64,000 nt of DNA from Podarcis tiliguerta (GCA_965153285.1 OZ229115.1), one strand, 5' to 3'; numbered from the stretch's first letter, positions 20,700 through 63,920 are shown. The notes: generated by a model from the letters alone, not told the origin. A program made the numbers and translations.

Positions 20700-20877
20700 C
20701 CTTCAAGTATTTTATTGGGAGTGTGAATATTTTAGAAACTGTGGAACTTCTGAGGCAGAAACTCTAGCCCAGAGTCCAAGAGTTCAGTGTCCTATTCAGT
20801 GTCCTGTGTACCTGAAGCCTTGCACCATCTAAAATATAACCAGAACAATCTGAGGCAGTCTTCATCAACCCAAGAAG

Positions 20878-23800
20878 ATGTCTGATGGGACGTAAGTACA
20901 TTGTGTGCAATCTATATGCTTTGATTAGGATGATGGTTAAATAAAATAACAAAGTGTGCCAGTTGCTTGACATGTTGATTAAGCAAGCTTTATTACAGGA
21001 GAAACTCACAGAAATAAGATGGGAAGGGTAATTAACCTGATGCATTAAGGAATAAAAAGGCAGCAATTTGGCTTTTCTTTTTTCCTGATGATAATTTTTA
21101 TTAATTTTCAATTACAATCCAATAATAGCCTCATTTGCAACAATACCAAATTATAATACAATTACTAATACCAATCATTAAAATACTGGATTATATAATT
21201 TAGGTGGCCCCCCACATGCTAGATTTGATGGTTTGGTGGTTTTCTTTATTTCTGCGTTCCAAAATCTTCCTAATTTCAATTAAATTCTGGTTAAAATAAT
21301 CCCTTATACAACAACTGCAGTATTAATAACGTCTATTTGTGTTGACACATTAAATGATTTATAGAACTACAAGTGAGGCACTCAAACTATATCCTTGTTT
21401 TTCCTGTGTATGGCAATTATTCTGTTCGTGGTGTTTCTTCCTGCCCTTGTAAAATGTTATGTCTATCTTTCCCCATCATGCCATGCCTGGAGCTGATACA
21501 GTCATACCTCGGGTTGAGCATGTTTGAGTTGCACTCCGCGGCAACCCGGAAGTAACCGAGCGTGTTACTTCCAGGTTTCGCTGGTTGCGCATGTGCAGAT
21601 GCTCAAAATGATGTCACGCACATGCGCAGAAGCAGCGAAAAGCGACACGCGTGTGCGCAGATGTGCCGTTGCTAGCTAGTCAAGTTCAAACCTTAACGAC
21701 CTTTTTGCTGGTTCTGTTCCGCAGTTTATGATCTCATTTCTTCTAGCATGCACCTGTACTTTAGTCCGCAATTTCTTGATACAAAAAGGTGTGAAAAATA
21801 GAATGGAACTTTTTGATTGTGATTAGGAACATAAGCGAAAATTGGTGTAAAAAGCTTTTGTTGGATTTCTGGCAAAACAACCTGCAAAAACTAACTTGTA
21901 AGCCTTAGGTAATGGTCTTTCATTGGAAAGAGAAACAAGACAGGTGTGGCCTCTGATTCTCAACCCCCCAATTTACTGATGGTTTAGTTATAATAAATTT
22001 GCAATAAAAGAGGAATGAGATGAAAATAACTATGATGTTACGTGAAGCTTAGCAAACACTATTTGATAACAGAAGGGGATAAGCAGAAGATGGGTTAAAA
22101 AATTAATTTAAGTAAAGCAGAGTCTACAGTACATAAATAGTAAATTTTTTTGGAATTGAATCAGTAGTCCTTATTATTTGTCAATTATTGATTTCAAAAA
22201 CAGATTAATTATTGGAGGCCAATGAAAGACTTATTAGAAAATTGCACCTAAATTTTCTAACATGAAATAGTCTACTACGACAGTCCTGTGCATGCTTACT
22301 TAGAAGTAAGGACCACTGTTTCACTGTGGCTTTTCTCCAGGAAAGGTGTGCAAGAGATTGCAGCAAGGAAACCCCCCAATGTGAAAGACAGACACATTAA
22401 AATTCATCATTTTGAAGTTTGAAAAGATATTGTGAAGTAGCTAAGAGAAGAAGGGGGGGGGGGGAATGTTGAGGAGAAGACTTGGGTAAATGAACAGAAG
22501 TGAGGAGATTGGAAATTAAAGCTGTGATCCTATGCCAAATTATCTGAAAATAAGATCTGTTGATCAATCTGGGACTTTTGAATAGGATGGCATTCCTAAA
22601 AATACTATACTAAGGGAATCGGATATAAAAGAAATTCATAAAGCATCCCTGTTAACCTCTTTATGTTCTGAACAAATGGCTTTAACAACTGGGACAAAAA
22701 TATGGTTGTAGAGAATAGGAAGTGTTTCCATAATGAGCTAGTTAGAAAAAGGAAAGGATCTATTGGTGTTACATGACTATGCCATACTCAGAGTAGACTC
22801 AGTGAAATCAGTGGACAAATTAGTCATGAATAGACCCACTGAAATCAATAGACATGTCAGTCCCTCACTTCTGGCTGGAAGGACCACAGAATGGGGTTCA
22901 GAATAACTTCCTGTGATAGGATAACAAACCGATAGTCTGCCTGCATGTTTCAAACTCCCCACCTCCTCTGTGTTCTTTGGCAGATGTCTGCGCAGAAGAA
23001 AAGGTGCACCCGAAATAGAACCCAAAACTGATCTTACTCGCTGGCGATTCAGCTCCGTGGAAGGGCGGCAGAAATGGTACTACGTGGCAGACAGTGAAGA
23101 ATGTGCCCGTGAACAGAATGCACTAGAGGCTTACACTTTAGGGCTGGACACTGTAAGTGGCTTAATGATAACAGATGGTACAACACTGAAAGGCTACAAA
23201 AGGAGCCCAGGGCATGAGGACTGCTGGCTTGGCCCTGCCCAGCAGCAGTTTCCCAAGGGCTGGGTCATTTTTCTTTTGACTTCTCATCTTCTGACACCTC
23301 AGTTAGGAACACAGGAAGCTTGGTTATTGCTTTCATAGAACTGTGGAAGGGATCATGAGGGTCATCTCCCCCAACCGCCTGCCACTTGGTGCTGTACAAC
23401 TGCAACTTGATAATGTCAGGGTTGAATATGAAACCCTACTTGAAAAAAGACAAGCCTGCAAGATGAATATGACAATCTACAGGAAATACATAACTTAGCT
23501 ATCACAAAGTAGCTGCTCTGTGCTTGATACCTAGAAAGCTGAGTGAGTTCATCTGCAAGCCAGAGTCAGTGTAGGGTTCTTACCTGTGGAAAGGGAGATG
23601 GGCTACATGATCTTCGGGTCCCTCATATTCTATAGTTCTCTTATCTGAGAGCTCTGTGGTGTTCTCCTAGAGAACAGCCACTCTCTTGCTCTGTCATCAA
23701 TTTCCAATATACTGTGCCTAATAATCATTTCCATGATGCACAGGTGATGCATCTGCATGAGGCATTTTGATGTGCATGAAAATACTGAGGCACATGAATC

Positions 23801-26800
23801 CAATATGCAGTTTGTTAGGCCTCTGACTGACGGCTGGATTTCTAAACAGTTGTGATATCCCATTTTGTGAGATGTTGGCAGGTGTAGATTTCACTTGAGA
23901 TGTGTTTGTAAAACATAGTTTTGGAACCGTCTCTCAGGGCTAAACCATCCAGTACATTTAATGACTTTTTGTATTTAGCTGACTGTTGTTTTAAACCGAA
24001 ACAAGTTCATGAGGGCCCAGTCCGGATAGGGATTGGGGTGGGTGGAGAAGAAAGAGTTATCCCTTTCCCAGCCTGCCCATGTCTCCAGGCAAATAGCAGC
24101 TGGCGATGGGCGTTTCTTTGAGACTGCTGCTAGGAGGGGAAGTGTTAAATGACACCTCCCCATCTGCCATGGTCCCATTCCTGACCACCCTTCCCTGCTA
24201 TATTTATTTCTAAGTGACCAAATAGTTGCATGAAATGTAGCAGGACATTTAACACAATGCATACTTTGTCTTGTAGATAGTCTGTTTAGTTTTTGTACAT
24301 TTCTCTTACTTTTCCTATTTTGTTTTACAGAGCAAGTTCTTTCCAGATTTGCCCAAAGTTAGCACCGCCCAGGAAGCAGTCCAGAAAGCGATTCAATTCT
24401 TCTCTGGCCTGCAAGCGGAAGATGGCCATTGGGCCATGGAGTGCTCTGGCGTTCTCTCTCTTGCACCAGGTACATGGACACTAGTGGATTTACCACATAT
24501 ACATTAACTGGCTAAGGAGGACCTCCCTGTATATTTTCTATAAACTTGTTTATCTTCTTTTACCAGACAGACACAAATAGGTTGACATTTGGAGAAACCT
24601 CTTAAACTGAGGCCTTCTTTTAAGAGCTATTATGCAGTGTGTGAATGTTCCTCGCTCGAGACACTTCTCCACTCTTTGAAAACTTCTTTGATCTCAGTGT
24701 CATGAATGTCTTCTTCCATGCATGAGAGGCTAAACCTTGAACCCTCTTAATTCAGAAGGGAGTTTTTGTAACTAAGATATATATCCCTGTTATCTTCCAT
24801 CACTGCATAATTATTTCAGCTGACAGGAGTGTCAGGGGTCGACACTTAGTCTTCCATTACCTTCCCTGGAAGTCTGATCCCTGGAAGATGTGTATGTTCT
24901 TCAAGCCAGATTGCCTTGGGTCACCTGCCTGGGAAATTCTTCATTCTCAGAATTTCCTATAGTTAAATTTATATACATATTTAAATCCCTCTATTTAGGA
25001 AAACGAAGTCTAGCCTCTCTCACAAAGCAGAATACTTATTCAGTATATCCAGAACAGGGGGATAATCCATTGAATCCATTGTGCAGGATACTGTCCATCA
25101 ATGGCATCATACAGCTGTATGGAGATGTGGTAGACCAGATGATTTAAATTTTTTCTTCCCCTTACAGTTAATCTTAATTATTATTTTTAACTGTCTTTAC
25201 TGAAAAGTTTAATATTTCCTGTAAACCACTTAGCGGGATTATGTCACTGAAGTGGTATATAAATAAATAATAAAATTTGATTTGTGTGCAGATCAAGATG
25301 AGAGAGAAATTTGATTCAGTTTGCAGTTAAAGGTCTTATTAGCACTTTCAGAAACAGTTTGAGAACTGAAACACAGGCATTCTTTGAAGTTCGCTCTTCA
25401 CTGATTTTTGTAGTGCCACGTAGTGTGTACAATGGCGTATACTAGAGTAAAAACACAAATATTGTTATGTTTGACCTTTTTCTTCTGTTTCAAGATGGTA
25501 AAAACAAACGAACAATGGGGTACAAAAGCATAAGTTACGTTTCAATATCCAAACAGGCGGTTTATTGGCAAATCATACCAAAGTTAAGATTGTCAAGTAC
25601 TACACATCTTCTTCTCCTTTTTTAACCAAACAGCTATTTTGATGTCATGTTATGCTGCCAAGATCTCACTACCAGAAGAGGTTGAGAGAGAGCTCCTGCG
25701 CTACATCCTCTCAAAACAGCTTCCAGATGGTGGCTGGGGCCTGTAAGTAGTCCAAGGAGGGTGTGAGCTTCTCTAGAGTGGCCTGGGGAGAGATGTTCTA
25801 ATTCTGCATATCTTTGTCTTGGGCTGGTCCATGATGCAATTCCCCCATGAAGGCTTCTTTAAATCACTTCTGCATTCTGCTGTCTTTTGACTGTGAGCCT
25901 TTTATTTGCAATACTCACCATGTGAACTGGGCACCAGCGTAGATGACCAGAATGCAAGCTGGCCTCAGCATGTACTGAAGTTGCCCAGCTGTGGCGGAGA
26001 AAGATAGAATTCTGGCATGATGAGTGGAGAGAGGCAACAATAATGAAGATATGATATCTGACATAGCTATTGCCTTTGAAAAGCACCATCTTTAGGAAGT
26101 ATTACTATTGATAAATGGTGTGGTGAGGCCAGGTTGCCTCCATCCAAATGTAGCCTGTCAAACCACAAAATGGATTGGAGTTTGATTGAGCTTTGAATCT
26201 GAATTCTTAGTAGCATAGTATCAACTTTATTTAGCTGCAATGGAATTTCAACTGGTACTCAGGTTGTGTGAGCTGCTCTCAAGCCCATGCTGCCTCATGA
26301 AAGGAAAGATTTCAAAGTACCAAATGCCCTTCATTAAGGCATTACTTTTTTAAAAAGGTAATACCAAACAAAAGAAGGTATTCTGTGGTGCCCCGGCTAA
26401 TGGTTAGCTGACTGGGTATGGGTGAGGCAAATTCTCAGAGAAGCTTTTGAATTTAAGGTAATGCACCAGAAGAATGGAAACTAAACAATTCAAAGAGATT
26501 TCTAGACCTCTGGACTCACTGGTCCACTTTCTAATGGCTCTTTGATTTCTCTTTTCATGTAGCCACCTTAAAGAACAGTCAACAGTATTTGGCACAACCT
26601 TTAGCTACATAGCTATGCGAATCCTTGGACTTGGGCCTGACCATCCAGATGTAGTGCGGGCTCGGATAAATCTGCACAAGAAAGGTAAGGCAGAAATCTC
26701 CGGCAGGGCTGGATCAATCCATTTTGCTGGAATGTAGTGCCCAGGCAAAGCTGGGGGCCCTGATGTAGTTATTTGGGAGCATCTTCCTATTCTGTCTCCC

Positions 26801-28664
26801 GCCCTCCCTTCTTTTGTGGGTCTTTTTAGAAATCACCATAGATTGATCATAGAAATTGTGTCTATGTCCCAAATAGAAGATGCTGGTCATATCTTCCCTC
26901 CCATTTTCCCTTCTCTAAAATTTATATTGGGAACTCTTGGGATGGGGGACATGGACCTGCCCTTTTATGCCACTCCATAATGCACAATATACAGTGATAA
27001 AAATTTATTTTACTGTATTCTTTATTTTACTGTATTCTTAGAAATACAAAGAATCAGGTGAATTATAACCTCCCTTTTGCAGTAGCATTTTGCGGTGAAC
27101 CCCCTCTTAACTACTGCTTATTTTTTTTTTTTTTTGGTTTTATGAAGAAAACTCTCTGGTACTTGGAGACTTAGGAAGCTTAAGCATAGAGGTAGTGTTG
27201 GGTGGTATTAAATGTGGACACCACAGCAGTTCTTATACTCATGTCTCCTCCTGATATAGGTAAGAAGAAATCTGAAAAACCACATGCCATATGGCTCTCT
27301 CTAAATAATGAGAACAATCCTAGAAAAAAGAAAGCTAGGATTAAATGTCTTTGTCGTCTTCCTGTACAAAAGAGGGTCTTTCCAAGCACTATTTCCCTTT
27401 TCATAGTTTTGCAAAGTATCTTCACAGCAAGGCAATAATCGTATCTAGGTTTTCATTGTAAATTTATTTGGCTTTGTCCCCTTCAGTCTACAGAAGCAAA
27501 GATGTTGATAATTCTCTCTCCAGGTGGCGCTCTTGGAATCCCTAACTTGGGCAAAGTTTGGCTGGCCATTATGAATTTGTACAGCTGGGAGGGAATGAAT
27601 TCACCATTTCCCGAGTTGTGGTATGTGTCCGAAAGTTTACTGATCCCCACCCTACGCCACCAATCATGAAATCCCCCTCCCAATGTCTACAGTGTTACAC
27701 AGTAGACAAATTCTTTATTAAATAACAGTGACTTGGAAATTTAAATTAATCCATATTAATCTTCACCACTCTTACAGGTCCAAAGAGGCCTGGGCTAGTT
27801 CCAGTTTTTGAGGCCCCTAGCCATAAAAAAATAAAGATAAGAATGACAACTCTGGAAAACAAAATAAGGCACCAACAACATAGTGGGGGATTATTGCTTT
27901 GTTTGTTATTGTGTTATTGTGTTTTTATACTTTAAATTGCCCTGATCCTCAGATGAAGGGCAATATAACCTGCTTTTAGTGTTACCACTATATCCAGGAT
28001 TCCTGACATTGTCTTCCATGAACCTGTTTCTTCCTTCTTTCTGAAATAGGCTGTTTCCTACATGGCTGCCGGGACATCCCTCAACATACTGGTGTCACGC
28101 TCGCCATATCACCCTCGCGATGAGCTACTGCTATGCCACTCGCCTGACTATAGAAGAAGATGAATTGATCCAGAGTCTAAGACAGGCAAGGCAACATTCT
28201 CCAAACATCCCACCATCTTTGGTCAAAGTGGGACCCTCGTACTGCCTTGGATCTGCACTTGGGGGATTGCTTGCTTGTATCTGATAGGGAGAAGGCTAAA
28301 CTGGATGTCTTATTTTCCATTTAAGGCAGAAGTCGAGCTCAGAGCATTGGTGTTTCAAAATGCCATGGGAATATTTATTTTGGAGAGAGGTGGGAGCATG
28401 GAAACTTGGCCATCCCTATTCCATAGGGGAGGGCAACTTTGGGAGGGTAGAATTTGGAGTGGAGATGGTGCTCATGGCATCACCCTGCTAAGTCACATAA
28501 GTTTCTCTCCATTCATGCTATTATTTTAATTTATTTAAATGGCTCTGTGCTTCCTGTGCCACAAAGTATTCATTAACTCTTTGCCTCTTTTCGTAAAAAC
28601 TGGTGAACAACATCAATATTGCCTCCTACATCACTGTAATACCACAATCTCCCTTTTTGATGCT

Positions 28665-28703
<39 letters not shown>

Positions 28704-31700
28704 CTCCCCCCCCCCCTTTTGGTGTGGTAAAAGGAGCTTTCTTCTCCCCTCTTCTGTACTACCAGAAAAACAAATCAATGAAGAACTGTTGAACCATTAA
28801 TCTCCTATGTAGTACCCTTCTCTTTCTCATCTAATGTTTTATTTATTTATTAATAATTATTTATTATTTATTATAACATACTTTTTCATTTAAGTATCAA
28901 AATGGTGATGACTTAGACTATAGCTCATGAAAGCTGATGCCATAACACAGGGAGGGGAAAATGCTGAAATGAATTTGCTGGGGTTTTTTAAAAGATCCGA
29001 AATGACATTTGTCAAGTACACTAATATCCTGCTGCTTCTTTACTATGAAAGTCATTTCACTTCATGGTTTCCTTCTAGGAGATTTATGTGGAGGACTTCT
29101 CCACCATTGATTGGCCAGCCCAGAGGAACAATATTTATGAAGCCGATTTGCATTCTGCTCACAGCTGGATGCTGGATGCTGCTTTTGGTGAGTGATTTTG
29201 GAATTGGCAAGTCTTTTTCCAGGAGTTCAGGCCTCCAACGTAGGTTTCCTAGGGTTTAGTTGAGAGAAAGAGATTTCTGTTGGTATAGGCAAACACTTTT
29301 CATCAGAGGATATCCATGGAAACACACAACATTTTCCAAGTTTCATATTATCATATGTAGCAAGCAAATATTTAGCCAATTACAAGGACAAGGGATATTG
29401 AATCACACCGTGAAGACAGCGTGTGGGATCTCTCACACGATCTGAATTGTGATTTCTACCCCGCCCATTGCTTTTACAGTGTGAATTGGGATCCCCTGCC
29501 ATTGTTGATCAGTTAAGGAAGAACAAGATATGTAACTACTTGATGCAGGGGTGCCAACAGGATTATCTGGGTCCAATGCATTGTACCTTGATTGGGCTCT
29601 CTGACTCACTTGCCAAAGAGAACGCAGATCTGCATAAAATGTGTGTGTGTGTTGTGTAACATGCAAATTTGTGTCCTCTTTTGCAGGTAAGGTGGGAGGC
29701 CCACAAATGAAGAAGGGCATGTTTTGCTTCTTTACATTCTCATAGTTTGGGGGCCCTACTGATCCCAATGAGAGCTAGTGGGAGGGTCCTAGCAGCAGTT
29801 TTATGGCGCTTAATGACCCCCCCCCCATTTGCTTCCCAGTGAACCTTAAAATGATCAAACTGTTTCATTCCATTTCTCTAGATCTAACCTTGCCCAAGCC
29901 AAAGGAGAAAATCTGGCAGGGATTGTGATTTTGGCTCTTCAATTTTGGGGGTGGGGGTGGGTCCAGGGTGGAGGTTTGTTGGGAAAGATTTTGGGAGGGG
30001 ATCTGCAAAAGGTTCATGGAAGTTGGGGGTAAATGAAAAGAAAAAAACCAAATGACCCCAAACAACTGGTGCCCACCCCTTCACTGATCCCCCCCCCCAA
30101 AAAAAATCATATTTGAAATTAGGGGCTGAAATCCTGCCTCTGTTTTGAGCCAAAATATATTTCAGAAGCAAGTGCCATTGAATTCAATGGCGCCCTCTTC
30201 CAGGTAATTGCATGGAGGATTGCAGCCCCAAACACATGAGGAAGATAGAACTGCATTAACATGATTGCGATGTTCATAGTGACTCTCTTATTCCTTCTGC
30301 AGCTACCTTCAATTTGTATGAGAGATACCATTTCACCAGTTTCAGAAAGCAAGCCATTGCAGAAATGTATGAGCAAATCAAGGCTGACGACATATTCTCA
30401 AATGCCACCAATTCTAGCCCGGTAGGTCCCTTGTGAAGAAAAAAATTGTACTGGGAACAAATTCCTTTTGATGACAGCATATACTCATTCTCTTGAGGAA
30501 GCTTTGCTTCAAAAACCAAACAGAGAGCTATGTTTGTGGCAATCTTGTTCTGCCCGCTTGAGTTTCTGTGTTTGGCTGGTGAGATACAGACAGGTAGTCG
30601 TGTGGCAGATGAGAGTGCTAAGCATGCAGGTATTGCAGAGGGGAATTCCTAACTGTAATGATATTCTCTTTTGTCCTGCAGACTTGTAAAGCATTTCATG
30701 TGCTAATAAGCAGGTATGCTGATGGAGCCGATTCTCCAGCTTTTCAAGAACATATCTCCAGGATCTATGACTACCTTTGGTAAGCCTGGCATATTTATTC
30801 AAACCCATCTTTGTAGAACCCTGAACATGCTCTTGCATAAGTGTGCTTTTGCAGACCTGGATCTTTCCTCAAACCAAGGTCAATCAGACTAGGAAATGTA
30901 AATGGTGTGTACACCTGTGACAGCCGTAGTATGTGCACACATGAGCACAGATGCTCAGATGGCAGCTTCATTACTAGGAGTTCTGTGAGGGTGCGGGGGA
31001 CCAGCAATGGCATGCACACTCTGTAAAGATCTCTGCCTCTGATGTGAAACAACACTGTGCAAATGCAGCTTGCAGTGCAGTAGGAAAAAAAATCACCTTG
31101 TTGTGTTTTAAGCTGCATATGTGAACATATCCTTATTTGCAGCATAGGTGGAACTCAGAAAGGTGTCATGCACACCTGCGTCCCACTCATTGTGTTGTCT
31201 GGAAGAGATTTCAGGGAGATTTTGCTTTTTGGCTATTCTTAAAGCCTATTCTAGTCTTGTCAAGCCTTGGTCTCCTGTTATGCAATGAAGTTAGAGAACT
31301 ACATGGACTTGCGTCTGCTATAATCTCTGCTTCTTATATCTCTGCAGGATTGGACAAGATGGTATGCTAATAAAGGTACAGTAGTGTGGACCCAGATGTT
31401 GGGAATTGCCGTGGCCTGCAATTTGCATTGCTTTGGTGACTCTGAAGCTGAGTTGTCTTCTGCCTGCCTGATATCAAAATATCAGGAGATCCAGTCTTGG
31501 ATCTCCTGCATATAGTGTAGCTTCACCCCAGGATTAGGCTAGGAGGCAAGATGTAACATAACACAAGGTCATGTAGCACCTTTTAAAAATGCTGAACCAG
31601 ATATTATCTAATATGCTGAAAATCCAAAGACTTGTGTTGCTTAACTGAGTTTCAGTTCAGCAGAGAAGTTCAGATTTTTGCAAGTCATAGCTGCAGAACA

Positions 31701-40802: not shown

Positions 40803-40808
40803 AATAAA
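40803..40808 (+). terminator. Candidate polyadenylation signal of OSC copy A
   Basis: AATAAA about 820 nt after the stop codon. Confidence 0.45.
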
Positions 40809-44700: not shown

Positions 44701-45860
44701 TATTCTCGAGTCTCAGAATTGCCACTAGTTAATGTTTTATCCTTTAAACAAAACAATTCACCCCTGTTTAGGAAAACTAAGCCTTTCTCACAAAGCAGAA
44801 TATATTTTCAGTACATTCTGAACAGGGGGATAATCCATTGAATTCATTGGGCAGGATATTGTCCATTGTTGGCATCACATAGGGGATGTGTGTGTTTTTA
44901 ATTTTTACTCTCAGTCTGAATTATCTATTGTTTTTATGGATAATTTTAATATTTCTTGTAAACCACTTAGAAGTTTTACTACATTGAATTGGTAAACAAA
45001 CAAATAAACAAATATATAAATATATAAATGTGATTGGCATGAAGATTGAGATGAGAGAGAGGCCTTATTAGCACGATTGGAAACAACTCAAGAATTGAAA
45101 CACAGGCATGTTTTGAAATTCACTCTTCGCTGAATTTTGTAGTGTAGTTCTCATGCCAAGTAATGTGTCCAGCTGCATATTCTAGACTAAGGTGTGCATA
45201 TAAATGCATTTATTCATGAAAATAACATCAGAAATGCATAGTATCAGGAAAATTGCTTTGCAAAAATGTGTATATTAGGATGGTGAATTTTCATGAGGAG
45301 TTTTCTTAAAAATCACAAACTGATGTGAAAAGGTGAACTGAACTTTGAAATGAAGAAGTGAGAGGAGCTGAATTCAGGGTCAGGTTTGTCCCGTGGCATC
45401 TCCTGATAGGACTGGGTAAGACCTCTCTGAATCCCAAGATGGACCAGAGAAGCCTGGCACCTGCAGTTCAGTAGTTCACCACACAGGGGAAGTGCATATA
45501 CCTCCAGGCAATCTCTGTAAGTAGCTTCTCACATTGAAAATTGCAGGTACAAATTATGCACCTTCAAGTAAAGTGACAGAAGCGATGATCTTTTGCCTAA
45601 ACTTGCTGGATGATGAAATATTATTATCCTTGACCTTTTTCTTCTGTTTCAAGGTGATAAGAAAACCCAATAGTGATACAGAAGCACAATATAATTTTTC
45701 ATATCCAAACAGGTGATTTAGTGGCAAATCAAACCAAAGATGAGATAGTCAAGTATTATAAATTGTTCTTTTTCTTTTTTTAATCAAACAGGTCTTTTGA
45801 TGGCATGCTATATTGCCAGGATATCATTGCCACAAGAGGTCAAGAGAGAGTTCCTGCGCT
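41788..45860 (+). pseudogene. Truncated OSC/LSS-like copy B
   Basis: Promoter block (ATTGG 41788, TATATAA 41806-41812). Exon 1 ATG at 41988 (extra in-frame ATG at 41985), ending 42001 with a GTAAGT donor. No exon 2: 42030-43280 is unrelated sequence and intron-2 homology resumes near 43280. Exon 3 44074-44212 is intact ([46 protein letters not shown]). Exon 4 starts at 45792 (GLLMACYIARISLPQEVKREFLR) and breaks off near 45860. Confidence 0.88.

Positions 45861-46564: not shown

Positions 46565-46569
<5 letters not shown>

Positions 46570-46604
<35 letters not shown>
46570..46604. repeat. (TG)n microsatellite
   Basis: Direct inspection. Confidence 0.9.
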
Positions 46605-46606
<2 letters not shown>

Positions 46607-49149: not shown

Positions 49150-49176
49150 ATGATGGTTGGGTCAGTCTTTATATAA
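49150..49176 (+). promoter_or_regulatory. Core promoter of OSC copy C
   Basis: TATATAA 49170-49176 in the block homologous to copies A and B. The ATTGG is mutated (tgatggttgg) and the half-site reads GGGTCA. Confidence 0.55.
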
Positions 49177-49358
49177 CCTTCAAGTATTTTACTGGATGTG
49201 AGCCTGAATGTTTTAGGAATTGTGGACCTTCAGAGGCAGGAACTCTAGTCCAGAGTCCAAGAGTTCAGTGTCCTATTCAGTGTCCTGCGTGCCTGAAGCC
49301 TTGCACCATCTAAAATATAACCAGAACAATCTGAGGCAGTCTTCATCAACCCAAGAAA

Positions 49359-52300: not shown

Positions 52301-55300
52301 CTGCTTAAATCAGTTGTCTTTCTTTTGCCTGTACAAAGCTGTTCATCATAATAACATAGGAAGCTGCCTTATCCCACTGGCACATTTATCTCAACACTGA
52401 ACTGGTAGCAACCCTCTGTGGTTTCCCCAGCTCTATGCCCAGGATCCAACTTGGGATTTTCTGCCACAAAGCAAAAGCTATCACTCTTTCCAATGAAGTC
52501 AGAATAATCTAGAATAATGGACCTGTAAGCCTTTAGTATGAAAGGAACAAAGAGCTCTCACCTTTCAGAAACAGCATGAGAACTGAAACACAGGCATCCA
52601 TTGGCATTTGCTATTCACTGAATTTTGTAGTGCAGTTCTCCAGTCACATAATGTGTAGAATGGCATATGCTAGAGTAACAACAACAGCAGAAACAACAAT
52701 AATAGCTTTGCACAAATTTGTATATTGGGATGATGAATTTTCATGAGAACTAAAATGAAAATGAAAATCACAAACTCATGCAAAAAAGTGAACCAAACTT
52801 GGAAATGAAGTGAGAGAAGTGAGAGAAGCTGAATTCAGTTCAGTCCCTGTATGCAGAAGGTCCTAGGCTTGTCCTCTGGCATCACCTGATAGGAGACCCC
52901 AGCAGTTTGAAGAAAATTCACTGAGAATCCTGCTGGCTGTTGTTCAATGGTCTACCACACAGGGGATGTGCATACAGCTCCAGGCAATCACTGTAAGCAG
53001 CATCCAACATTGAAATCATGCACCTTCTAGTAAGGAGGCAGAAGTGATGATATTTTGCCTAAACTTGCTAGATAATTAAATCTTGTTATGTTTGACCTTT
53101 TTCTTCTGTTTCAAGATAGGGGAAAAAAACCCCACATCTACCAGGGGTACAAAAGCACAAATTACATTTTGATATCCCATCAGGTGGTATCCAAACAAAT
53201 CAAACCAAAATTGAGATAGTCAAGTATTACACATTGTTATCTTTTTTGAAAAATCAAACAGGTTTTTTGATGTCATGTTATGCTGCCAAGATCTCACTGC
53301 CAGAAGAGGTCGAGAGAGAGCTCCTGCGCTACATCCTCTCAAAACAGCTTCCAGATGGTGGCTGGAATTTGTGAGTAGTCCAAGGAGGGTGTGGTGTTCT
53401 AATTCTGCATATGTTTGTCTTGGGCTGGTCCATGATGCAATTCCTCCATGAAGGCTTCTTTAAATCACTTCTGCATTCTGCTGTCTTTTGACTATGAGCA
53501 ATACTCACCATGTGGACTGGGCAGCAGGGCAGATGACCAGAAGGCCAGCTGGCCTCAACATGTACTGAAGCTGCCCAGCTGTGGCAGAGAAAAATAGAAT
53601 TGTGGCATGAGGGGTGGAGAGAGGCAACAATAATGAAGACATGATTGTGACGTTAACATATGAGAGAGTGCTGGAGGTGAAATAGTTAAACAGGTTACCC
53701 AATCAGGACCCAGGGGGGTGGAGTCAGAGGGACTATAAAACCAGCTCTGGGAGGGGCAAAGGGGGAAGTTTGTTGGGAGTTGGGTGGTTGGTTGGAGTGG
53801 GAGTGAATTGGGCTAGAGTTTGTGAGTAGGTTGAGTTAGTGTTACGAAATAAGCTTAGGGTTGAGTTAGTGTTATGAAATAATACTTAGGGGCTAGGAAG
53901 ACAAGTAAATATCTGAGAGGGGGTTTAGTGAGTGGGAGCAGGTAGCGGAAGTTATAGGTCTGGATAGGCACCCCATGTTTGTAATTGACTGATACCGTTT
54001 ATTAAACCACATGCTTGTTAAACTGCAATAAATAAACAAAAGTTTATGTTCCAATTTAACCCTGACTGGGCTCAGTATTGCACCAGGTAGGGCCTGGGTG
54101 GTGGCAGCGGGAAATAAAGTGGTGGCACAGGGATCAATAGACGGTGAAACGTCCGGGGACCCTGTGTGATCGCCACAATGATATCTGACATCACTCTTGC
54201 CTTTAAAAAGCACCATCTCTAGGAAGTATTACAAGTGATAATGGTCTGGTGAGGCCAGGTTGCCTCCATCCAAATGTATCCCGTCAAACCAATAGCAAAC
54301 CACAAAATAGTTTGGGGTTTGACTCAGCTTTGAATCTGAATTCAGAATCTACATTCTCATTGACCAAGATCAGCTTTATTTATCTGGAATGGAATTTCAA
54401 CTGGTATTCTGACTGTATGAGCTGCTGTCAAGCCCATGCTGTCTCCTGAAAAGAAACATTTCAAAGCACTACATGTCCTTCATTAAGGCATTACTTTTTT
54501 AAAAAAAAGGAAATAGAAAACAAAAGTAGGTATTCTGTGGTATCCCGGCTAATGGCTAGTTAACTGGGTATTCTTGGAGTACAGTGGTACCTTGGGTTAA
54601 GTACTTAATTCGTTCTGGAGGTCCGTTCTTAACCTGAAACTGTTCTTAACCTGAAGCACCACTTTAGCTAATGGGGCTTCCCACTGCTGCCACGCCACCG
54701 GAGCACAATTTCTGTTCTTATCCTGAAGCAAAGTTCTTAACCTGAAGCACTATTTCTGGGATAGCGGAGTCTGTAACCTGAAGCATATGTAACCTGAAGT
54801 GTATGTAACCCGAGGTATCACTGTATTCTGACAAGTTCTCAGAGAAGTTTTTGAATTTATGTTAATGCACCAGAAGAATGGAAACTAAACAATTCAGACA
54901 GCTTCTTAGACATCCAAACACTCTGGTGTACTTTCTAATGGCTCTTTGATCTCTCTTTATGGTAGCCATCTTACAGAACAGTCAACAGTATTTGGCACAA
55001 CCTTTAGCTACATAGCTATGCGAATCCTTGGACTTGGGCCTGACCATCCAGATGTAGTGCGGGCTCGGATAAATCTCCATAAGAAAGGTAAGGCAGAAAT
55101 CTCTGGCAGGGCTGGATCAATCCATTTTGCTTGAGCGTAGTACCCAGGCAAAACTTGGGGGTCCTGGTGTTGTACAGTTATATGGGAGCACCTCTCTATT
55201 CTGTCTCTTTTCCTTCCTTCCTTCCTTCCTTCCTTCCTTCCTTCCTTCCTTCCTTCCTTCCTTCCTTCCCTCCCTTGTGGGTCCTTTTAGAAATCTCCAT

Positions 55301-58300
55301 TGATTGGCATATTGACACCATTTCTATGATCAAACAGAAGATGCTGGTCATATCTTCCCTCCTGTTTTTTTCCTCCTCCAAAATTTATATTGGGAACTCT
55401 TGGGAGAGTCTGGACACGGGCCCTTTTGTGCCACTCCATAAAGCACAAATGCAGCGATAAAATATTATTTAATAAATACAAAGAATGAGGTGAGTTATAG
55501 CCTTTTTATTGCAGTAGCATTCATACATAGGGTTTAATGGCACAGTGGGAGGTGAAGTACAGTGGTACCTCGGGTTAAGTACTTAATTCGTTTGGGAGGT
55601 CCGTACTTAACCCGAAACTGTTCTTAACCTGAAGCACCACTTTAGCTAATGGGGCCTCCTGCTGCCGCCGAGCCGCCAGAGCATGATTTCTGTTCTCATC
55701 CTGAAGCAAAGTTCTTAACCTGAAGCACTATTTCTGGGTTAGCGGAGTGTGTAACCTGAAGCGTATGTAACCTGAAGCGTATATAACCCGAGGTACCACT
55801 GTAGTTACTTCTGCATGGATACAGTCTGAGAAACATATGCATATGGTTCCAGGATGATCAGGGCATTCACTCTGTCCAATATAGAAATGAAGAGGGGACC
55901 CTTTGGCTCAAACCTGTTCAGAAACTCTACACTGAATGTAGCTGACAGCTGTGCAGCTGCTGCTAGACTTGCCCTCCAATGTGTGGAGTGTGGCCAAGCC
56001 AGGCAATGAGGGTATGACAGGGCAGTTAACATATATAAATATATTAAATTCAGTCGTTGTTACAGGCGTCTAAACAGGGTGGAAAACACAGCTTATTTTC
56101 ACTTCAATTTCTTCAGCTAATTGCCTAGGTGTTACAGCTTAGGACTTACGTAATACTTTGGTTCTGAAACAGGGTGGTAATATCTTTATATACATATATA
56201 TTAATATTTTATTTTAAGAATTTGTTGCTTACATTTTACATTCATATCAACACAACAAAACACTACCTTTTGGAGGTTCTCAACCCCCAGACTTCCCCCC
56301 ATCCTCCTCCCCGGTTTCCCATCGTTACCACTTATCTTTTCTGCATCTTTATATATTTCTCTAATTTATTCATTTCCCTTATTACAGAATTTACCCTAAT
56401 TATATCACCAGTGCTATTCTAAGCCTGCTAAAGTTTTTATGTGTTTACAATGCTCCTTCAGATATTCTACAAAATTAGTCCATCTTTTAAAAAACATTTT
56501 GTCCTCTTGGTGTCTGGTCTTCCCAGTCAATTTCGCCATTTCAGCATAGTCCATTAATTTCGTTATCCATTCTTCTTTTGATGAGGTTCTTTCTTCCTTC
56601 CATCCCTGGGCATATAACATTCTCACTGCTGTTGTCGCATGCATAAATAAGACCTTTTTCTCCTTTGGGATTTCTTCTCCTATTATACCTAATAGAAAAG
56701 ACTCTAGTTTTTAAATAAAAGTTATTTTAAACATTTTCTTTAATTCATTATATATAATTTCCCAATATGCTTTTGCTAATTTGCAGGTGCACCACATATG
56801 GAAAAATGTGCCTTCTTTATCTTTACATTTCCAACATGTACTAGACATTTACTCGACATATCATTCCACACTTTTACATAATTATCTTGAAATAAGTTTA
56901 TTTATTTTTTATGTTAACCGACCCCTAAATATTTTACTTTTCTATCTTTAATTCTGTTATTTGTTCAAGTTCATTTTTATTTTGTTCTGTCATATTTTTA
57001 ACCAGCATTTTTTATTTTCCTTTATTTAACTTAAAACCTGCCACTTGGCCAAATTCATTCAATTTCTCTAACACTTTTGGTACCGATTCCAAAGGATTTT
57101 CTACCGTTAATACTAAATCATCTGCAAATGCCTTAAGTTTGTATGACCTAGTTCCAATTGTGATGACTTTGATTTCTTCATCTGTTCTTATCTTTCTCAA
57201 CAAAGTCTCTAACACCAGAATAAATAACAGGGGTGACAATGGACACCCCTGTCTTGTTCCCTTTGTTATATTACATTTTTCAGTAACTGTATTGTTTACT
57301 ATTAATTTAGCCTGTTGCTCAGAATAAATTGCCTCAATACCCTTAGCAAAGACCTGTCCAAAATTCATTATTTCAATTACTTTTTCCATATATGTCCATG
57401 ATATATTATCAAAAGCTTTCTCTGCATCAATAAAAATCAAAGCTGCTTGCTTATCAGTTCTAACTTCTAGATATTCAGTCACATCAATAATGTTCCGTAA
57501 ATTATCTTTCATATATGCACCTGGTAAAAAACCGGCCTGATCTCCATGAATTCATGGGTGTAATTCAGGGTGGTACTTTCTGTCAGTTTCCCAACCTTCT
57601 ATAAATCTTACTTGTGAGGCTCCTCTAGTATAACAGACCAGGGGATCAGCTCACCCGTCCGACTGGTTTGGGATTCTTCTCTTTCAAGAAGATCTCTCCC
57701 CTTCTTACTGAATTGAGAATCCAAATAATATGTCCTCTCACATGTGCTGTTCCCAATTCAGCTTCCCAGTTTTCTCTTGTCTATATACTCTTAAAATCAC
57801 TGTCTCTCAAACTAAGTTCAGAGGCTTTTTTTCTGATTACAGAGTGGATTTAACACACAGCTCAGGAGCTATACAACAATCCAGCTGAATGCCAGAACAC
57901 CAGTTCCTTAGCTGCTTTTTTCTCATGCCTACGCCAAGTGCTGTCACCACCTCCCTCTGGCTACCTGTACCCACAACCAATCAAAAGGAGGCTGCGGCAC
58001 AGCACTCTAGTGGAATTCTGAGGCACTGCATCACTAAACTCTAAACAAGTTGCGCTTTCAATCTCACAAGGCTATAAACATATCTCGGTTTTCACTGAAG
58101 GTTTCTTTGACTTTGCCCCTTCAGTCTATGGAAACGAAAAATTTGTTAATTCTCTTTCCAGGTGGTGCTCTTGGAATCCCTCATCTGGGCAAAGTTTGGC
58201 TGGCTACTATGAATTTGTACAGCTGGGAGGGAATGAATACACTGTTTCCTGAGCTCTGGTATGTGTCCTAAAGTTTACTCATCCCCAACCCACCCTGCCG

Positions 58301-61300
58301 ATCATGAATTGCCAGAGAAAGGTCTCTGCTGCAATAGTATTACACAGTAGACAGATCCTTCACTAAATAGCGATGACTTGGAAATGGAGACATCCATATT
58401 AATCTTCACTACTTCGTGTCTTTGTGACAGAACCTGTTCCTCACAGGATATCATGTAGAGGTTACTCAGAGGAAGAACATCTACTCATGAGTCAGAGTGA
58501 GGTATGGCTGGTTGCCATACCTCTGCCTGATTGGTGAGCAGATACATGTCATGGATGTGGCATATGCTGCATGCTAAGGAGCAAAAACTGCAAGCCGCAA
58601 ATGGAGCTCAAACAGCAGCCCATAGGCCTGGGAAATTATTTTAATGATTTTAGGACTGCTTTAAGCAGTGCTCTTCCCCCTAAAAAATTGTTTAGGGGTA
58701 CTCTCATTTTCTGACTCATATTAAAATACTGCCCCTCAATGAGGCCAAACTTAGATTCACAAAATGTTTAGATGTATGTGCACCCCTGCATACCCCCAGA
58801 AAAGAAGCACTGGTTTTAAGCAAGAAGTAACCAGAAGCTTGCAGAAGATACTAGGTTTCAGGAACTACGTGTGTAAAGAAATGCTGAGACCATTTGGTCT
58901 CTGTGACCAGTGAATTCTTGTCTATCATATTTTTTTTTTGGTAATAGGGTATAACAGGGTTTCAATCTGTATATATAAGAGACTATGGACTCAGCTATAC
59001 AGCTGCAAATAAAACGCTTTAAGTGTGTTTTAAGAGCAATATACAATGTGACACAAGATGGCGATGGTGAGCCTTATGGAAAATTCAAGGTATTTTTTAA
59101 AAGCATTTTCAGAACATTTTTTATATGTGTGTAGATTCTACCTATATAATAGTTTGCTCATGTGCAACCGTCTCTCTGCCTTTTTGATGTGCTTGGGATT
59201 ACAAAGCACAGCTACAAAGATGTTTGGTGCACATTATGCCAATGTGCACATCATGGCAATACTGCACTGGTCCCCTCCACACTTCATTTCCAAGCTCAGA
59301 GTGCAGGCACTCTCAGAGGTCCACAGAGGCCTAGGCCGCTTCCAGTTTTTGAGATCCCTAGCTTTGATAAAAATGAAGATGAAAACGTCAATACTGGAAA
59401 GCAAAATAAGGCACAAAAAATATAGTGGATTGCTTTGTTTGTTATTATGTTATGCTTTTTTGTCTTTTTATACCGTAAACTGCCCTGTGATCCTTGGATG
59501 AAGGGCAATATAACCTGCTTTTAGTGTTACCACTACATTCAGGATTCCTGACATTGTCTTCCATGAACCTGTTTCTTCCTTCTTTCTGAAATAGGCTGTT
59601 TCCTACATGGCTGCCGGGACATCCCTCAACATACTGGTGTCACGCTCGCCATATCACCCTCGCGATGAGCTACTGCTATGCCACTCGCCTGACTGTGGAA
59701 GAAGATGAATTGATCCAGAGTCTAAGACAGGCAAGGCAACATTCTCCAAACATCCCACCATCCTTGGTCAAAGTGGGACCCTCGTACTCCCTTGGATCTG
59801 CACTTGGGGGATTGCTTGCTTGTATCTGACAGGGAGAAGGCTAAACTGGATGTCTTATTTTCCATTTAAGGCAGAAGTCGAGCTCAGAGCATCGGTGTTT
59901 CAAAATGCCATGAGAATATTTATTTTGGAGAGAGGCGGGGGCATGTAAACATGCCACTTGGCCATCCCTATTCCATAGGGGAGGGCAACTTTGGGAGGGT
60001 GGAATATGCAGTGGAGATGGTGCCCAGGGCATCACCCTGCCAAATCATGTAAGTCTCTCTCCTACCATGTTTTTGTTTTAATTTATTTTAATGGCTCTGT
60101 GCTTCGTGCTCCACAGAGAATTGCTTCAGACCTTTGCCTCTTCTCCTAAAAACTGACAGACAACACCCATGTTGCCTTCTCTATCGCAGTACCATAATAC
60201 CAGACTCCCCCTTTTTGATGCATCTTTTTCTTTCTTTCTCCCTTTCGTTTTGGGTGGGAAAATGTGTTTTCTCCTCCCCTCTTCAGAACTACTGAAAAAC
60301 AAATCAATGAAGAACTGTTGAACCATTGATCTATGGAGTTTCCTCCTCTAATATTTAATTCAAGTACACTAATATCCTGCTTCTTCTTTACTATGAAAGT
60401 CATTTCACTTCATGGTTTCCTTCTAGGAGATTTATGTGGAGGACTTCTCCACCATTGATTGGCCAGCCCAGAGGAACAATATTTACGAAGCCGATTTGCA
60501 AACTGCACACAGCTGGATGCTGGATGCTGCTTTTGGTGAGTGATTTTGGAATTGGCAAGTCTTATTCCAGGAATTCGGGTCTTCAACGTAGGTTTTCTAG
60601 GGCTTCCATGGCACAGAGAAAGAGAGGAAGAGACTTCTGTTGGTATAGACAAACACATTTTCTGAGGAATAAGACGTGGCTGTTTTGCATGTCCTTGGCC
60701 CAGACATATATCCATGGAAACATACAACAACTTCCAGGTTTCATATTATCACAGCTTGTTAGCTGGAAGCAAACAGTCAGCTCTGAGAGCAAACACAACA
60801 CAAACCTTTGTAGCAAATACAAGTAAGAGCCTTGCTTTGTGAGCAAGAAGCCTGAACCATGCTATGGACATATGCCATGGAATTATGGATTTTGTTGTCT
60901 CATAAACATTCATGGTGATCATCACTGTGGTTTTGCCTGTCAGACTACAGGATAGTTTGGGACAAACGATCGTAGAAAGGTTTTGAGAAGGGGATCTGCA
61001 AAATGTTCATGGAAGTGTGGGCGGGGGTTACCACAGATGGAAGGCATGGCATTTTGGGTTTTTTCTCTGTGTTAAAAAATTGATTTTTTTATTTTTTTTT
61101 AAAAAAAACTTTAACTGTTGAAAGCTAAATTGTGTTTGTCTTGGCAGACTCTGGCTGGTATCTGCCATTTTCATCTACAGAGAATGCGCTGAATTCTGGG
61201 GGATATGTCAGCTGCCACAGTAACCACCATTGGTGGGCACAATTTCGGTGTGGTAGCAGCTGTTCTCCTTTTCCCACTGAATTCTGGGGGAAAGAAAATG

Positions 61301-63920
61301 GTCAGCCTGCAGCTGCTGAGAATTCCGCTTACCCTTTAAATGGGTAACAAGATGGCCAATCACAAATCTGCTAAGTGGTGTCACTTGGGTCCACACATGA
61401 AAGAGGGTGTCCCATTAAAGGGATCCACAAGGAGTTGCTTCTGTCTGAACATCCAGGCGGGGGTTAGGGTTATAGCACTCATTGACCAGGGACCCTTTGG
61501 GGGGGTACCCCAATTTGGTGAAGGTCATAGTATTGCGTTGGTTGACCTTAGAAAAACTTCCAGTCGGTAGGTTGGACTTCAAATGATATACCCAATGCCT
61601 ATGGCTAACATTCACATCTGTAATCAATAAAGTTGTGGCCTATTTGACCCATTTTACATTTACTCTCTTTGTCCTGTCTGGTTATTTCACTGTAATGGGG
61701 GCAATGGGGTCATTCATGGTGACTTGGCATGCAAGCTCCTCACTTTTAGAAAGGCAAAGGGAAAAAACCAAATGACCCTAAACCACTGGTTCCCACTCCC
61801 TGGTAAACCCCTTGTTCACACCCATGTTAGTTTTGCAGATTCCCCCCAAAATCATCTTTGAAATTTGGGGGCTGAAATCCTGGCTCTATCTTGAGCCAAA
61901 ATATCTTTTGGAAGCAAGTGCCATTGAATTCAATGGCGCCTTTTTCCAGGTAATTGCATGGAGGATTGCAGCCCAAAACACATGAGGAAGATAGAACCGC
62001 ATTAACATGATTGTGATGTTCATAGTGTCTCTCTTATTCCTTCTGCAGCTACCTTAAATTTGTATGAGAGATACCATTTCACCAGTTTCAGAAAGCAAGC
62101 CATTGCAGAAATGTATGAGCAAATAAAGGCTGATGACATATTCTCAAATGCCACTAATTCTAGTCCGGTAGGTCCTTTGTGAATGTCTTTCAGAAATAAT
62201 TGTATCGGGACCAAATTACTTTTGATGGCAGCATATGTTCCTTCTCCTGAGGAAGATTTCCCCCAGAAACCAGTATACTTCCAAAGGTAGAGCTATGCTT
62301 GTGACAATCTTGTTCTGCCTGCTTGGAAGAGTTTCTGTGTTTGGCTGGTGACATGCAGAGACATAGCCATGTGGCAGATGAGTGTGCTAAGCATGGAGGT
62401 ATAGTGGAGGAGAATTTCTAACTGGAATGATATCTCTTTTGTTCTGTAGATTTGTAAAGCGTTTCATGTGCTAATAAGACGGCATGTTGATGGAGCCAAT
62501 TCTCCAGCTTTTCAAGAACATATCTCCAGAATTTATGACTACCTTTGGTAAGGCTGGCATATTTATTCCACCCATCTTTGTAGTGTCCTGAACATGGTCT
62601 TGCATAAGTGTGGTTTTGCAGACCTTGATCTTTCCTCAAAAAAGGATCAATCAGACTAGAAAACGTAAAGCACATTCACACCGTACTTCAGAATGGTGTG
62701 TATACCTGTGACATCTGTCATATGTGCACAGATGAGCACAGATGCTGAGATGGCAGTTTCATCACTAGGAGTTCCAGGGGGTTGCAGGGGGAGGGGCAGA
62801 AAGGGCATGCACACTCTATAAAAATATCTCTGCCCCCTATCTGATGTGAACAACCCTGTGCAAATGTGGCTTGCATTGCAGTGGGATAAAATGACCTTGC
62901 TGCGTTTTAAGCCATTGATGTGAACATATCCTTATTTGCAGTATAGGCAGATCTCATGCACACCCATGCCTCACTCATGGTGTTGTATGGAAGAGATATC
63001 AGGATGATTTGGGTCTCCTATTATGCAATGCAGATAGGTAACTACATGGTCTTGTGTCTGCTATAATCTCTGCTTTTTATATCTCTGCAGGATGGGACAA
63101 GATGGTATGTTAATAAAGGTACAATAGTGTGAACCAATATGTTGGGAAATATTATGGGCTGCAATTTGCATTGCTTTGGTGACTCTGAAGCTCAGCTGTC
63201 TTCTCCTTGCCTGACAGCACCAGCTTCTTTGAAGTGAATATCAAAATATCAGGAGATCCAGTCATGACTCTCCTGCATAAAGTGTAGCTTCACCCCAGGG
63301 TTAGGGCTAGGAGATAAGATGTAAGATAATACCAGGTCATGTAGCACCTTTTTAAAATGCTGATTCAGATCTTATCTGATGTGCCAAGAATCCCAAAACA
63401 CATGCTGCTTAACTGAGAGAACAAGAGGAATTGATCAGTACACAATACAATCAAAACAAGGGCCAAGTGAAGGTGCAGAAGAGCCCTTTAGTTACTGATT
63501 TACTCCCAGTGCTCTTGCTTTCTTTTAAAATAGCGTATTATAAAATAAAAATGGGAGGAAACCAATTGTTCACCACTCCCACACAATTCTGACCACACAA
63601 ATTTCAGAGGCTTCCACACCAGTCCACCCACATTTTCCCATCTTCCACTCAGTTAAGCAGGAGGCCTTATCACCGTTCCATGAGACATTCCAGCCCTTAA
63701 GGAGGGTGCAGAGCAAGGCCAGTGGGGGAGGGTGTAGGCTGGGAAGTGGACATGACTGGGGAAGCATCCAAAGGGCTGGTTAGAGAGGACTGTATTCAGC
63801 TCCCAGGCCAGTAGTTCTCCACCCCTGATCTAATGGACAAAACTGTTCTTCCTTTCTTTATATCAGGTCATGGGATCACAGACCTGGGATACATCATTTG
63901 CCATTCAATGCTTCTTGGAG
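49359..63920 (+). CDS. LSS-like: Oxidosqualene cyclase / lanosterol synthase-like, copy C (exons 1-12; continues beyond window)
   Basis: Exons: 49359-49372, 50655-50823, 52032-52170, 53262-53370, 54966-55087, 58162-58258, 59595-59730 (GC donor), 60427-60535, 62049-62167, 62450-62547, 63091-63118, 63867-63920. All are the same length as in copy A, frame open, splice sites intact. Confidence 0.92.
53646..54177 (+). mobile_element. Solo LTR in intron 4 of copy C
   Basis: TGTGACG...CGCCACA termini. 5-bp TSD ATGAT (53641-53645, 54178-54182; single atgat in copy A). CCAAT 53699, TATAAAA 53734, AATAAA 54027. Confidence 0.85.
54582..54823. mobile_element. Tc1/mariner-type MITE
   Basis: CAGTGGTACCT TIRs with TA flanks; absent from copy A intron 4. 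Confidence 0.88.
55211..55270. repeat. (TTCC)n microsatellite
   Basis: Direct inspection. Confidence 0.9.
55560..55801. mobile_element. Tc1/mariner-type MITE
   Basis: CAGTGGTACCTCGGGTTA...TAACCCGAGGTACCACTG with TA flanks; absent from copy A intron 5. Confidence 0.9.
56200..57550 (-). mobile_element. L1 LINE fragment (RT domain plus ORF2 C-terminus, internally deleted)
   Basis: RT motifs [21 protein letters not shown] and AFADD (57012-57512) lie very close to the C-terminal Cys-rich region and [14 protein letters not shown] (56414-56644), implying an internal deletion. 3' UTR towards 56200. Confidence 0.9.
58666..58811. mobile_element. hAT-type MITE
   Basis: CAGTGCT...AGCACTG ends with a near 8-bp TSD (gctttaag/gttttaag). 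A partial relative lies at about 35905-36037. Confidence 0.7.

Follow-up and report, generated by a model that had tools for sequence, protein, structure and literature searches.

A tandem array of lanosterol synthase-like genes in Podarcis tiliguerta: a squamate paralog family and a probable second triterpene cyclase

Introduction

Vertebrates are treated as animals with one oxidosqualene cyclase (OSC), lanosterol synthase (LSS), whose sole job is the making of lanosterol. The present paper concerns a 64,000-nucleotide stretch of DNA from Podarcis tiliguerta (GCA_965153285.1 OZ229115.1), hereafter the window, in which positions 20,878 to 63,920 are occupied by a tandem array of LSS-like genes. 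On the evidence of alignments and trees, these genes belong to a family which is shown to be a duplicate of LSS, of squamate stem or early crown origin, maintained beside an unchanged housekeeping LSS. Squamates probably have a second, uncharacterised triterpene cyclase. The reading favoured here, with rather better than even confidence, is that this squamate-specific paralog family, tandemly amplified in lacertids, is a functional epoxide-triggered cyclase in which substrate gating or the product has been changed. It is a second OSC family, long conserved and present in thousands of living species.

According to a paper published in 2022, animals have one OSC gene each, sea cucumbers being the sole exception (PMC9236903), and in a review from 2026 covering 348 characterised OSCs the words "vertebrate" and "reptile" are absent from the text (PMC13657253). 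Searches of a literature library for LSS or OSC paralogs in squamates or other vertebrates found no paper there, and the LSS-like family has been named by automatic annotation only.

The array and its complete gene

Three head-to-tail copies make up the array, namely copy A (complete), copy B (truncated) and copy C (intact as far as visible). This arrangement had been proposed in a preliminary description of the same DNA and is confirmed here by self-comparison of the window and by exon models (Table 1). The self-comparison displays a segmental tandem duplication, with copy A starting from about 20.2 kb, the partial copy B at 41.3-46.4 kb and copy C running from 48.1 kb to the end, the introns being 69-90% identical between copies.

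Copy A was reconstructed from splice sites and homology, with a full-length Capsaspora OSC (P0061) as the guide and with GT/GC-AG pairs scored. It is a complete LSS-like OSC gene of 22 coding exons encoding 748 amino acids, with a lone stop at the end, and the model rebuilt from the window agrees exactly with that put forward earlier. Exon 1 has 14 nt, exon 11 is a micro-exon of 28 nt, and the intron after exon 7 is of the GC-AG type, its GC donor being kept in both copy A (28186-28187) and copy C (59731-59732). In a six-frame scan of the window the OSC hallmarks were limited to the + strand and comprised a single SDCTAE motif (33995-34012) and several Q..DG[GS]W repeats, of which those within copy A exons lie at 25717-25737, 36448-36468 and 38204-38224. 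The SDCTAE exon aligns with residues 439-491 of human OSC (1W6K).

At the protein level copy A is 98.5% identical (11 differences, 0 gaps) to P0355, a protein of 748 amino acids named 'lanosterol synthase-like [Podarcis lilfordi]' by NCBI, and it has 13-16 differences from the LSS-like proteins of P. raffonei and P. muralis, which by itself assigns the window to a Podarcis-like lacertid. P0355 was used as a stand-in for copy A in the Pfam look-up, fold prediction and database comparison, and the translation of copy A itself in local alignments and trees. Both squalene-hopene cyclase domains, PF13249 (N-terminal) and PF13243 (C-terminal), are present in P0355 among precomputed Pfam matches. An AlphaFold2 model of P0355, built on a 46-sequence alignment, reached a mean predicted local distance difference test (pLDDT) of 85.9 and a predicted template modelling (pTM) score of 0.88. 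With this model Foldseek returned first 1W6K (template modelling (TM) scores 0.93/0.96, 57% identity), with 1W6J at the top too, followed by a plant OSC and by squalene-hopene cyclases (SHCs); the double alpha/alpha-barrel OSC fold with QW repeats is thus predicted for proteins of the copy A type.

Copy C is represented by exons 1-12 (398 amino acids), coordinate 63920 being the last base of exon 12. These exons contain no stops, all their lengths and splice sites match copy A, the GC donor included, and the product is 97.5% identical to P0422, a second LSS-like protein of P. raffonei, which is full length. Over the 398 residues copies A and C differ by 0.147 synonymous (dS) and 0.038 nonsynonymous (dN) substitutions per site, giving a dN/dS of 0.26. 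Because of this dS and of the 12-20% divergence of the introns, the copies are regarded as real duplicates and not as an assembly echo. Among the 31/398 residues that differ are 338, where A has Thr and C has the canonical Ile, and a stretch (copy A residues 104-109) directly after the rewritten Tyr98 loop described below, which hints at diversification inside the array.

Copy B lacks exon 2, and its homology stops inside exon 4, at about 45860. Such a truncated relic, together with the fragmentary or low-quality database models of several relatives, is what would be expected of a decaying pseudogene array or of an assembly or annotation artefact. As an account of the whole array this is, however, hardly credible. 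It is contradicted by the fully open frame and intact splice sites of copy A, by the open frame of copy C as far as visible, by full-length orthologues of 748-753 amino acids in lacertids, Rhineura, many snakes and Pogona, by the dN/dS ratio given above and by the divergence of introns between copies.

A family separate from canonical LSS

Protein cluster look-ups revealed both a canonical 'lanosterol synthase' and LSS-like proteins in Podarcis lilfordi, P. muralis, P. raffonei, Lacerta agilis, Zootoca vivipara and Rhineura floridana. The former is encoded on records of 133-139 Mb (240 Mb in Rhineura) and the latter on different records of 95-102 Mb (158 Mb in Rhineura). The array is therefore not the LSS of the species, as the same species carry the canonical gene on another, larger sequence record. 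A separate conserved LSS, the existence of which the preliminary description had proposed to confirm, is thus found in Podarcis and its relatives. The contrary case, in which this locus would be the only LSS and its substitutions would be common to reptile LSS, does not hold, for canonical reptile LSS has none of them. Copy A is 58-62% identical to each canonical vertebrate LSS compared, that of its own genus included, whereas canonical Podarcis LSS is 76% identical to both shark and monkey LSS.

In a maximum likelihood tree of 70 sequences (LG+G4, quick search) the LSS-like proteins of lacertids, the amphisbaenian Rhineura, ten snakes, Pogona and Sceloporus form one clade with a Shimodaira-Hasegawa-like approximate likelihood ratio test (SH-aLRT) value of 100. 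The stem of this clade measures 0.53 substitutions/site, and the clade is sister (support 90) to canonical squamate LSS, geckos included. The OSC phylogeny which had been suggested earlier as a check thus sets the family apart on a long stem. The novelty is, however, not confined to lizards as was first supposed, since snakes, an amphisbaenian and iguanians have it too. A placement inside squamates, after the split of geckos and scincoids, is not rejected by the approximately unbiased (AU) test (p = 0.33), and the duplication is therefore dated no finer than squamate stem to early crown. No LSS-like proteins of geckos, Hemicordylus, Elgaria, Varanus, Anolis or tuatara were found among the matches listed.

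Between Podarcis and Rhineura the identity is 86% for LSS-like and 89% for canonical LSS, and between Podarcis and Protobothrops it is 76% and 83%, respectively. The family is thus only a little less conserved than LSS. As far as can be judged from such protein comparisons and from the dN/dS of copies A and C, the LSS-like family is shown to have passed through a burst of change on its stem and then through long purifying selection.

At least two old tandem lineages can be told apart in lacertids, one of the copy A type and one of the copy C type. To the latter belong Zootoca, P. raffonei b and, of the three LSS-like proteins in L. agilis, a and c; the remaining one, L. agilis b, falls outside both. 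In Rhineura 12 LSS-like isoform proteins are recorded, three of them named X1, so there are probably at least three LSS-like genes. Proteins called 'lanosterol synthase-like' in turtles, birds and fishes were considered as family members and rejected, as they bear the canonical signature. A search of protein representatives with a single exon as the query, which matched mostly fragments, gave P0028, the LSS-like protein of Crotalus, and via its cluster goat LSS (P0151).

Several fragments deserve separate mention. P0344 (217 amino acids) and P0347 (212 amino acids), from Logan assemblies, are only partly aligned and are 68% and 55% identical to snake LSS-like versus 40-49% to canonical LSS; they may come from LSS-like genes of otherwise unsampled squamate lineages. 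P0321, a hypothetical protein of 431 amino acids from the deep-sea gadiform Coryphaenoides rupestris, is an OSC fragment with no more than 59% identity to salmon LSS. Its Tyr98 loop is rewritten in a manner of its own, with Cys at 98; His232 is replaced by Phe and Cys233 by Thr, and the GTN loop is changed. This fish may have a divergent OSC of independent origin, or the gene model may be poor.

Residues kept and residues replaced

Human numbering was transferred by means of a 732-residue Saimiri LSS serving as a ruler and was checked at D455, C456, C533, H232, W581, W387, F444, Y503, F696 and Y98 and by the 1W6K alignment. The comparison covered 41 canonical vertebrate LSS, from sharks to mammals, and 28 LSS-like sequences, with denominators that vary by site.

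The catalytic apparatus is kept in the LSS-like clade: D455 in 28/28, C456 in 25/28, C533 in 26/26, H232 in 26/27 and F444 in 26/28, with Y503, W230, W387, V453, W581, F696, Y704 and Y707 kept in nearly all sequences. Around it a set of positions which are invariant or nearly so across canonical LSS has been replaced and re-fixed, namely Y98C (27/27), W192L (25/27), F521Y (27/27), I524C (25/27) and C700G (24/24). Further replacements are P101V/I, C233A/T, V236I, Y237T/L/S, C449N, S580R, N697Y and I702L, and the segment SIGPIS (334-339) has become NSSP(I/T)C across the clade. When copy A was aligned in human numbering, all the catalytic and cation-stabilising residues listed in the preliminary description proved to be retained, and its list of cavity-lining substitutions was borne out in full. 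The 'GTN-loop deletion' reported there needs rewording: the loop is indeed shortened, but only G380 is lost (in 26/28 LSS-like sequences), T381 and N382 being replaced (T381V, N382M). This loss sits exactly at the exon 11/12 junction (31375/32176 in copy A, 63118/63867 in copy C), and Gly at 380 is retained by L. agilis b and Protobothrops. A shift of a splice site by 3 nt, and not a deletion inside an exon, may therefore be its origin.

These replacements bear directly on a rival explanation, according to which LSS-like would be a subfunctionalised isozyme, confined to certain tissues or stages and still making lanosterol, with its kinetics, regulation or membrane context tuned by the substitutions and its chemistry unchanged. 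It would accord with the retention of every residue that directly starts, propagates or ends the lanosterol cascade, and with the unchanged F444, the site of the product switch in sea cucumbers. It does not readily explain why Y98, W192, C233, Y237, T381, F521 and I524, invariant (T381 nearly so) in the canonical LSS sampled, were all seven exchanged, in copy A as in the rest of the clade, and then re-fixed. Tyr98 is present also in 3/3 non-vertebrate OSCs compared (Capsaspora and two further ones), so that its loss stands out within the eukaryotic family as a whole. Moreover, the burst on the stem was focused on active-site segments, which a purely regulatory split would not predict. The isozyme is accordingly thought rather unlikely.

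Upstream DNA lends the isozyme some further support. Each copy has a TATA-like box at the same distance from its start codon (Table 1), and the boxes are taken as putative promoters of the array copies. The ratio of observed to expected CpG around them is 0.13 (A) and 0.06 (C), versus 0.64 at the 5' end of the neighbouring PARS2-like gene. TATA-type, CpG-poor upstream DNA is typical of tissue-restricted and not of housekeeping genes, and would suit an isozyme with restricted expression. Indirect hints of transcription are given by several Ensembl and NCBI isoform models for LSS-like genes in P. muralis and Rhineura.

Substrate gate, active-site pocket and predicted structure

The constriction that separates the membrane channel from the active site is made up of human Tyr237 and Cys233 and of the equivalent of Ile524 (yeast Ile531), and replacement of the equivalents of constriction residues in yeast reduces activity (PMC3141018). 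At the Tyr237-equivalent position the squalene-accepting bacterial SHCs have Val or Ile (PMC3141018). All three gate residues are smaller in LSS-like (C233A, Y237T/L/S, I524C). Since C233, Y237 and I524 are the published gate residues, altered substrate entry is as plausible as an altered product. For nine pocket and gate residues of copy A, the side-chain volume lost comes to about 320 cubic angstroms, a rough figure.

Canonical LSS has 398 sites with an invariance of at least 95%; at 79 of these LSS-like has switched fully, and at 51 of the 79 the new residue is itself conserved. The re-fixed switches cluster within 4 residues of pocket positions (18/91 vs 27/624 elsewhere, odds ratio 5.5, p = 1.5e-6). 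Several observations nevertheless weigh against a changed product or gate. Strict enrichment in the pocket is modest: six residues are switched (p = 0.10) among the 17 for which a separate docking study on 1W6K (PMC8911567) served as the source, and when the list is extended by six further residues the count becomes 9/23 (p = 0.02), which is still modest. F444, the product-setting residue in sea-cucumber OSCs, is unchanged in copy A, and with H232, Y503 and F444 all in place lanosterol could still be formed.

The confidence of the P0355 model falls at about 430-450, 500-530 and 690-700 (pLDDT 56-71, and below 50 at 697-699). These loops carry F444, Y503/Y521/C524 and F696/Y697/G700. They may be truly flexible, or their low confidence may stem from an alignment in which canonical and LSS-like sequences give mixed signals.

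The lower confidence of three active-site loops and the heavily altered gate and pocket are also compatible with a protein that has retained the OSC fold without catalysis, for instance one that binds a sterol or triterpene or has a regulatory role. A mere binder would, however, have no need of the catalytic Asp found in all 28 sequences, nor of its partner cysteines, the aromatic residues that stabilise the cation and the His/Tyr dyad, which nearly all of them keep across lineages that parted well over 100 million years ago, and such a derivative is considered distinctly improbable.

Proposed mechanism and function

If LSS-like is the functional, modified cyclase favoured here, it would remain a class II enzyme in which D455, polarised by C456 and C533, would protonate the 2,3-epoxide of (di)oxidosqualene. 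The carbocation cascade would be stabilised by W387, F444, W581 and F696 and terminated by H232 together with Y503. Tyr98, which in canonical LSS forces the B-ring boat, has no counterpart. The three residues of the channel gate are smaller, the distal pocket would be enlarged by W192L and, in copy A, by I338T, and the loop at 380-382, beside the deprotonation dyad, is rewritten. The expected outcome would be either a non-lanosterol product or a switch to an epoxy-polyene substrate that is bulkier or otherwise different, and LSS-like would feed a squamate-specific lipid pathway instead of bulk sterol synthesis. Copies A and C would be two diverging members of the family and copy B a dead fragment.

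A bolder proposal may be put forward, though tentatively and at somewhat less than even confidence: squamates would possess a dedicated vertebrate triterpene synthase family, derived from LSS, of about crown-squamate age and amplified in some lineages, which handles a non-lanosterol triterpenoid or another epoxy-polyene for a squamate-specific purpose. An epidermal lipid barrier, chemical signalling and defence can be suggested as such purposes. The role in femoral-gland secretions raised in the preliminary description is weakened, for snakes have no femoral glands and yet have LSS-like, and a gland-specific role is therefore unlikely.

Were a new product to be made, the family would open an unexplored branch of vertebrate lipid or natural-product metabolism and would offer a natural experiment on the residues steering OSC chemistry. 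A specialised OSC pathway would then be known for the first time in a vertebrate.

Neighbouring DNA

About 4.4 kb upstream of copy A, on the opposite strand, lies a PARS2-like open reading frame (Table 1) whose top PDB matches are proline-tRNA ligases (E = 6e-92). At its 5' end there is a CpG-richer stretch (16400-17800, observed to expected ratio 0.64). We take this flank to differ from the neighbourhood of human LSS.

Intron 5 of copy C (55088-58161) is about 3.1 kb long versus 0.84 kb in copy A. The region is AT-rich at 56001-58000 (GC 0.35), with a strongly negative GC skew there (-0.27), and contains a local 251-nt repeat (54575-54825 vs 55553-55803). Insertion of a repeat element is the probable source of the extra length. 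The stretch 6799-7004 matches 54578-54794 and 55556-55772 in inverted orientation, with 86-87% identity; this dispersed repeat of about 210 nt, common to the region upstream of PARS2 and to copy C intron 5, likely represents a transposable element family.

Table 1. Features of the array and its surroundings in the window (nt, nucleotides; aa, amino acids)
Feature	Coordinates	Strand	Remarks
Copy A, LSS-like OSC gene	20878-39986	+	complete
Copy A exons 1-11	20878-20891, 22984-23152, 24331-24469, 25634-25742, 26563-26684, 27524-27620, 28050-28185, 29079-29187, 30303-30421, 30682-30779, 31348-31375	+	
Copy A exons 12-22	32176-32229, 32612-32683, 33656-33706, 33953-34102, 34965-35061, 35724-35829, 36408-36473, 37821-37901, 38155-38325, 38802-38880, 39807-39986	+	
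Copy A exon 3, rewritten Tyr98 loop	24331-24469	+	GDYGGP to MECSGV (Y98C, P101V, F103S); loop also in exon 3 of copies B and C
Copy A exon 7	28050-28185	+	W230, H232 kept; C233A, V236I, Y237T changed (gate/pocket)
Copy A exons 9-10	30303-30779	+	SIGPIS to NSSPTC; P337 kept; I338T confined to copy A lineage
Copy A micro-exon 11 and exon 12	31348-32229	+	MQGTNGSQ to IKVMGSQ; W387 kept
Copy A exon 15	33953-34102	+	SDCTAE with D455, C456; F444, V453 kept; C449N
Copy A exons 16-17	34965-35829	+	Y503, C533 kept; F521Y, I524C (gate residue) changed
Copy A exon 22	39807-39986	+	F696, Y704, Y707 kept; N697Y, C700G, I702L; longer C-terminal tail, stop
Copy B, truncated relic	41988-45860	+	exon 1 41988-42001; exon 3 44074-44212, open; exon 4 starts 45792
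Copy C, intact as far as visible	49359-63920	+	exons 1-12, 398 aa; runs past window end
Copy C exons 1-12	49359-49372, 50655-50823, 52032-52170, 53262-53370, 54966-55087, 58162-58258, 59595-59730, 60427-60535, 62049-62167, 62450-62547, 63091-63118, 63867-63920	+	
TATA-like box, copy A	20830-20839	+	taaaatataa; 48 nt 5' of start codon
TATA-like box, copy B	41940-41949	+	48 nt 5' of ATG
TATA-like box, copy C	49311-49320	+	48 nt 5' of ATG
PARS2-like gene, bacterial-type (mitochondrial) prolyl-tRNA synthetase	14970-16463	-	single exon, intact open reading frame; context marker outside array

Comparison with known cyclases

Canonical vertebrate LSS, represented by human OSC (1W6K), is like LSS-like in fold, in the DCTAE acid and its Cys partners, in the His232/Tyr503 dyad and in the aromatic residues stabilising the cation, and its layout of 22 coding exons is common with copy A. 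LSS-like differs from it in forming its own clade on another sequence record, in being 58-60% identical to the LSS of the same species, which is itself 76% identical to shark LSS, in having no Tyr98, Trp192 or three gate residues, and in its shorter, rewritten loop at 380-382.

The OSC families of plants which arose by duplication of cycloartenol/lanosterol synthase, for example beta-amyrin and lupeol synthases, likewise combine tandem amplification and a remodelled pocket with conserved catalysis. Plant OSCs of the dammarenyl type have Tyr at the position of His232, keep the equivalent of Tyr98, and their loop before GSQxWD is one residue shorter. A loop shorter by one residue before GSQxWD is found in 26/28 LSS-like sequences, a putative parallel with these plant enzymes. 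Squamate LSS-like would differ from the dammarenyl type in keeping His232 (26/27) and in losing Tyr98.

Bacterial SHC shares the class II fold with the P0355 model (TM 0.74/0.88). Olefin protonation in SHC relies on an acid of the DxDD type, whereas squamate LSS-like keeps the epoxide-type DCTAE motif. At the Tyr237-equivalent gate position bacterial SHC has an aliphatic residue and not Tyr (PMC3141018).

The parkeol and lanostadienol synthases of sea cucumbers are likewise tandem animal OSC duplicates which have diverged from LSS and kept His232/Tyr503 (PMC9236903). There a single pocket residue (444, F to L or Q) switches the product, and canonical LSS has been replaced (Thimmappa et al. 2022, PMC9236903). 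In contrast, squamate LSS-like keeps F444, has changed many pocket and gate residues, and canonical LSS persists alongside it.

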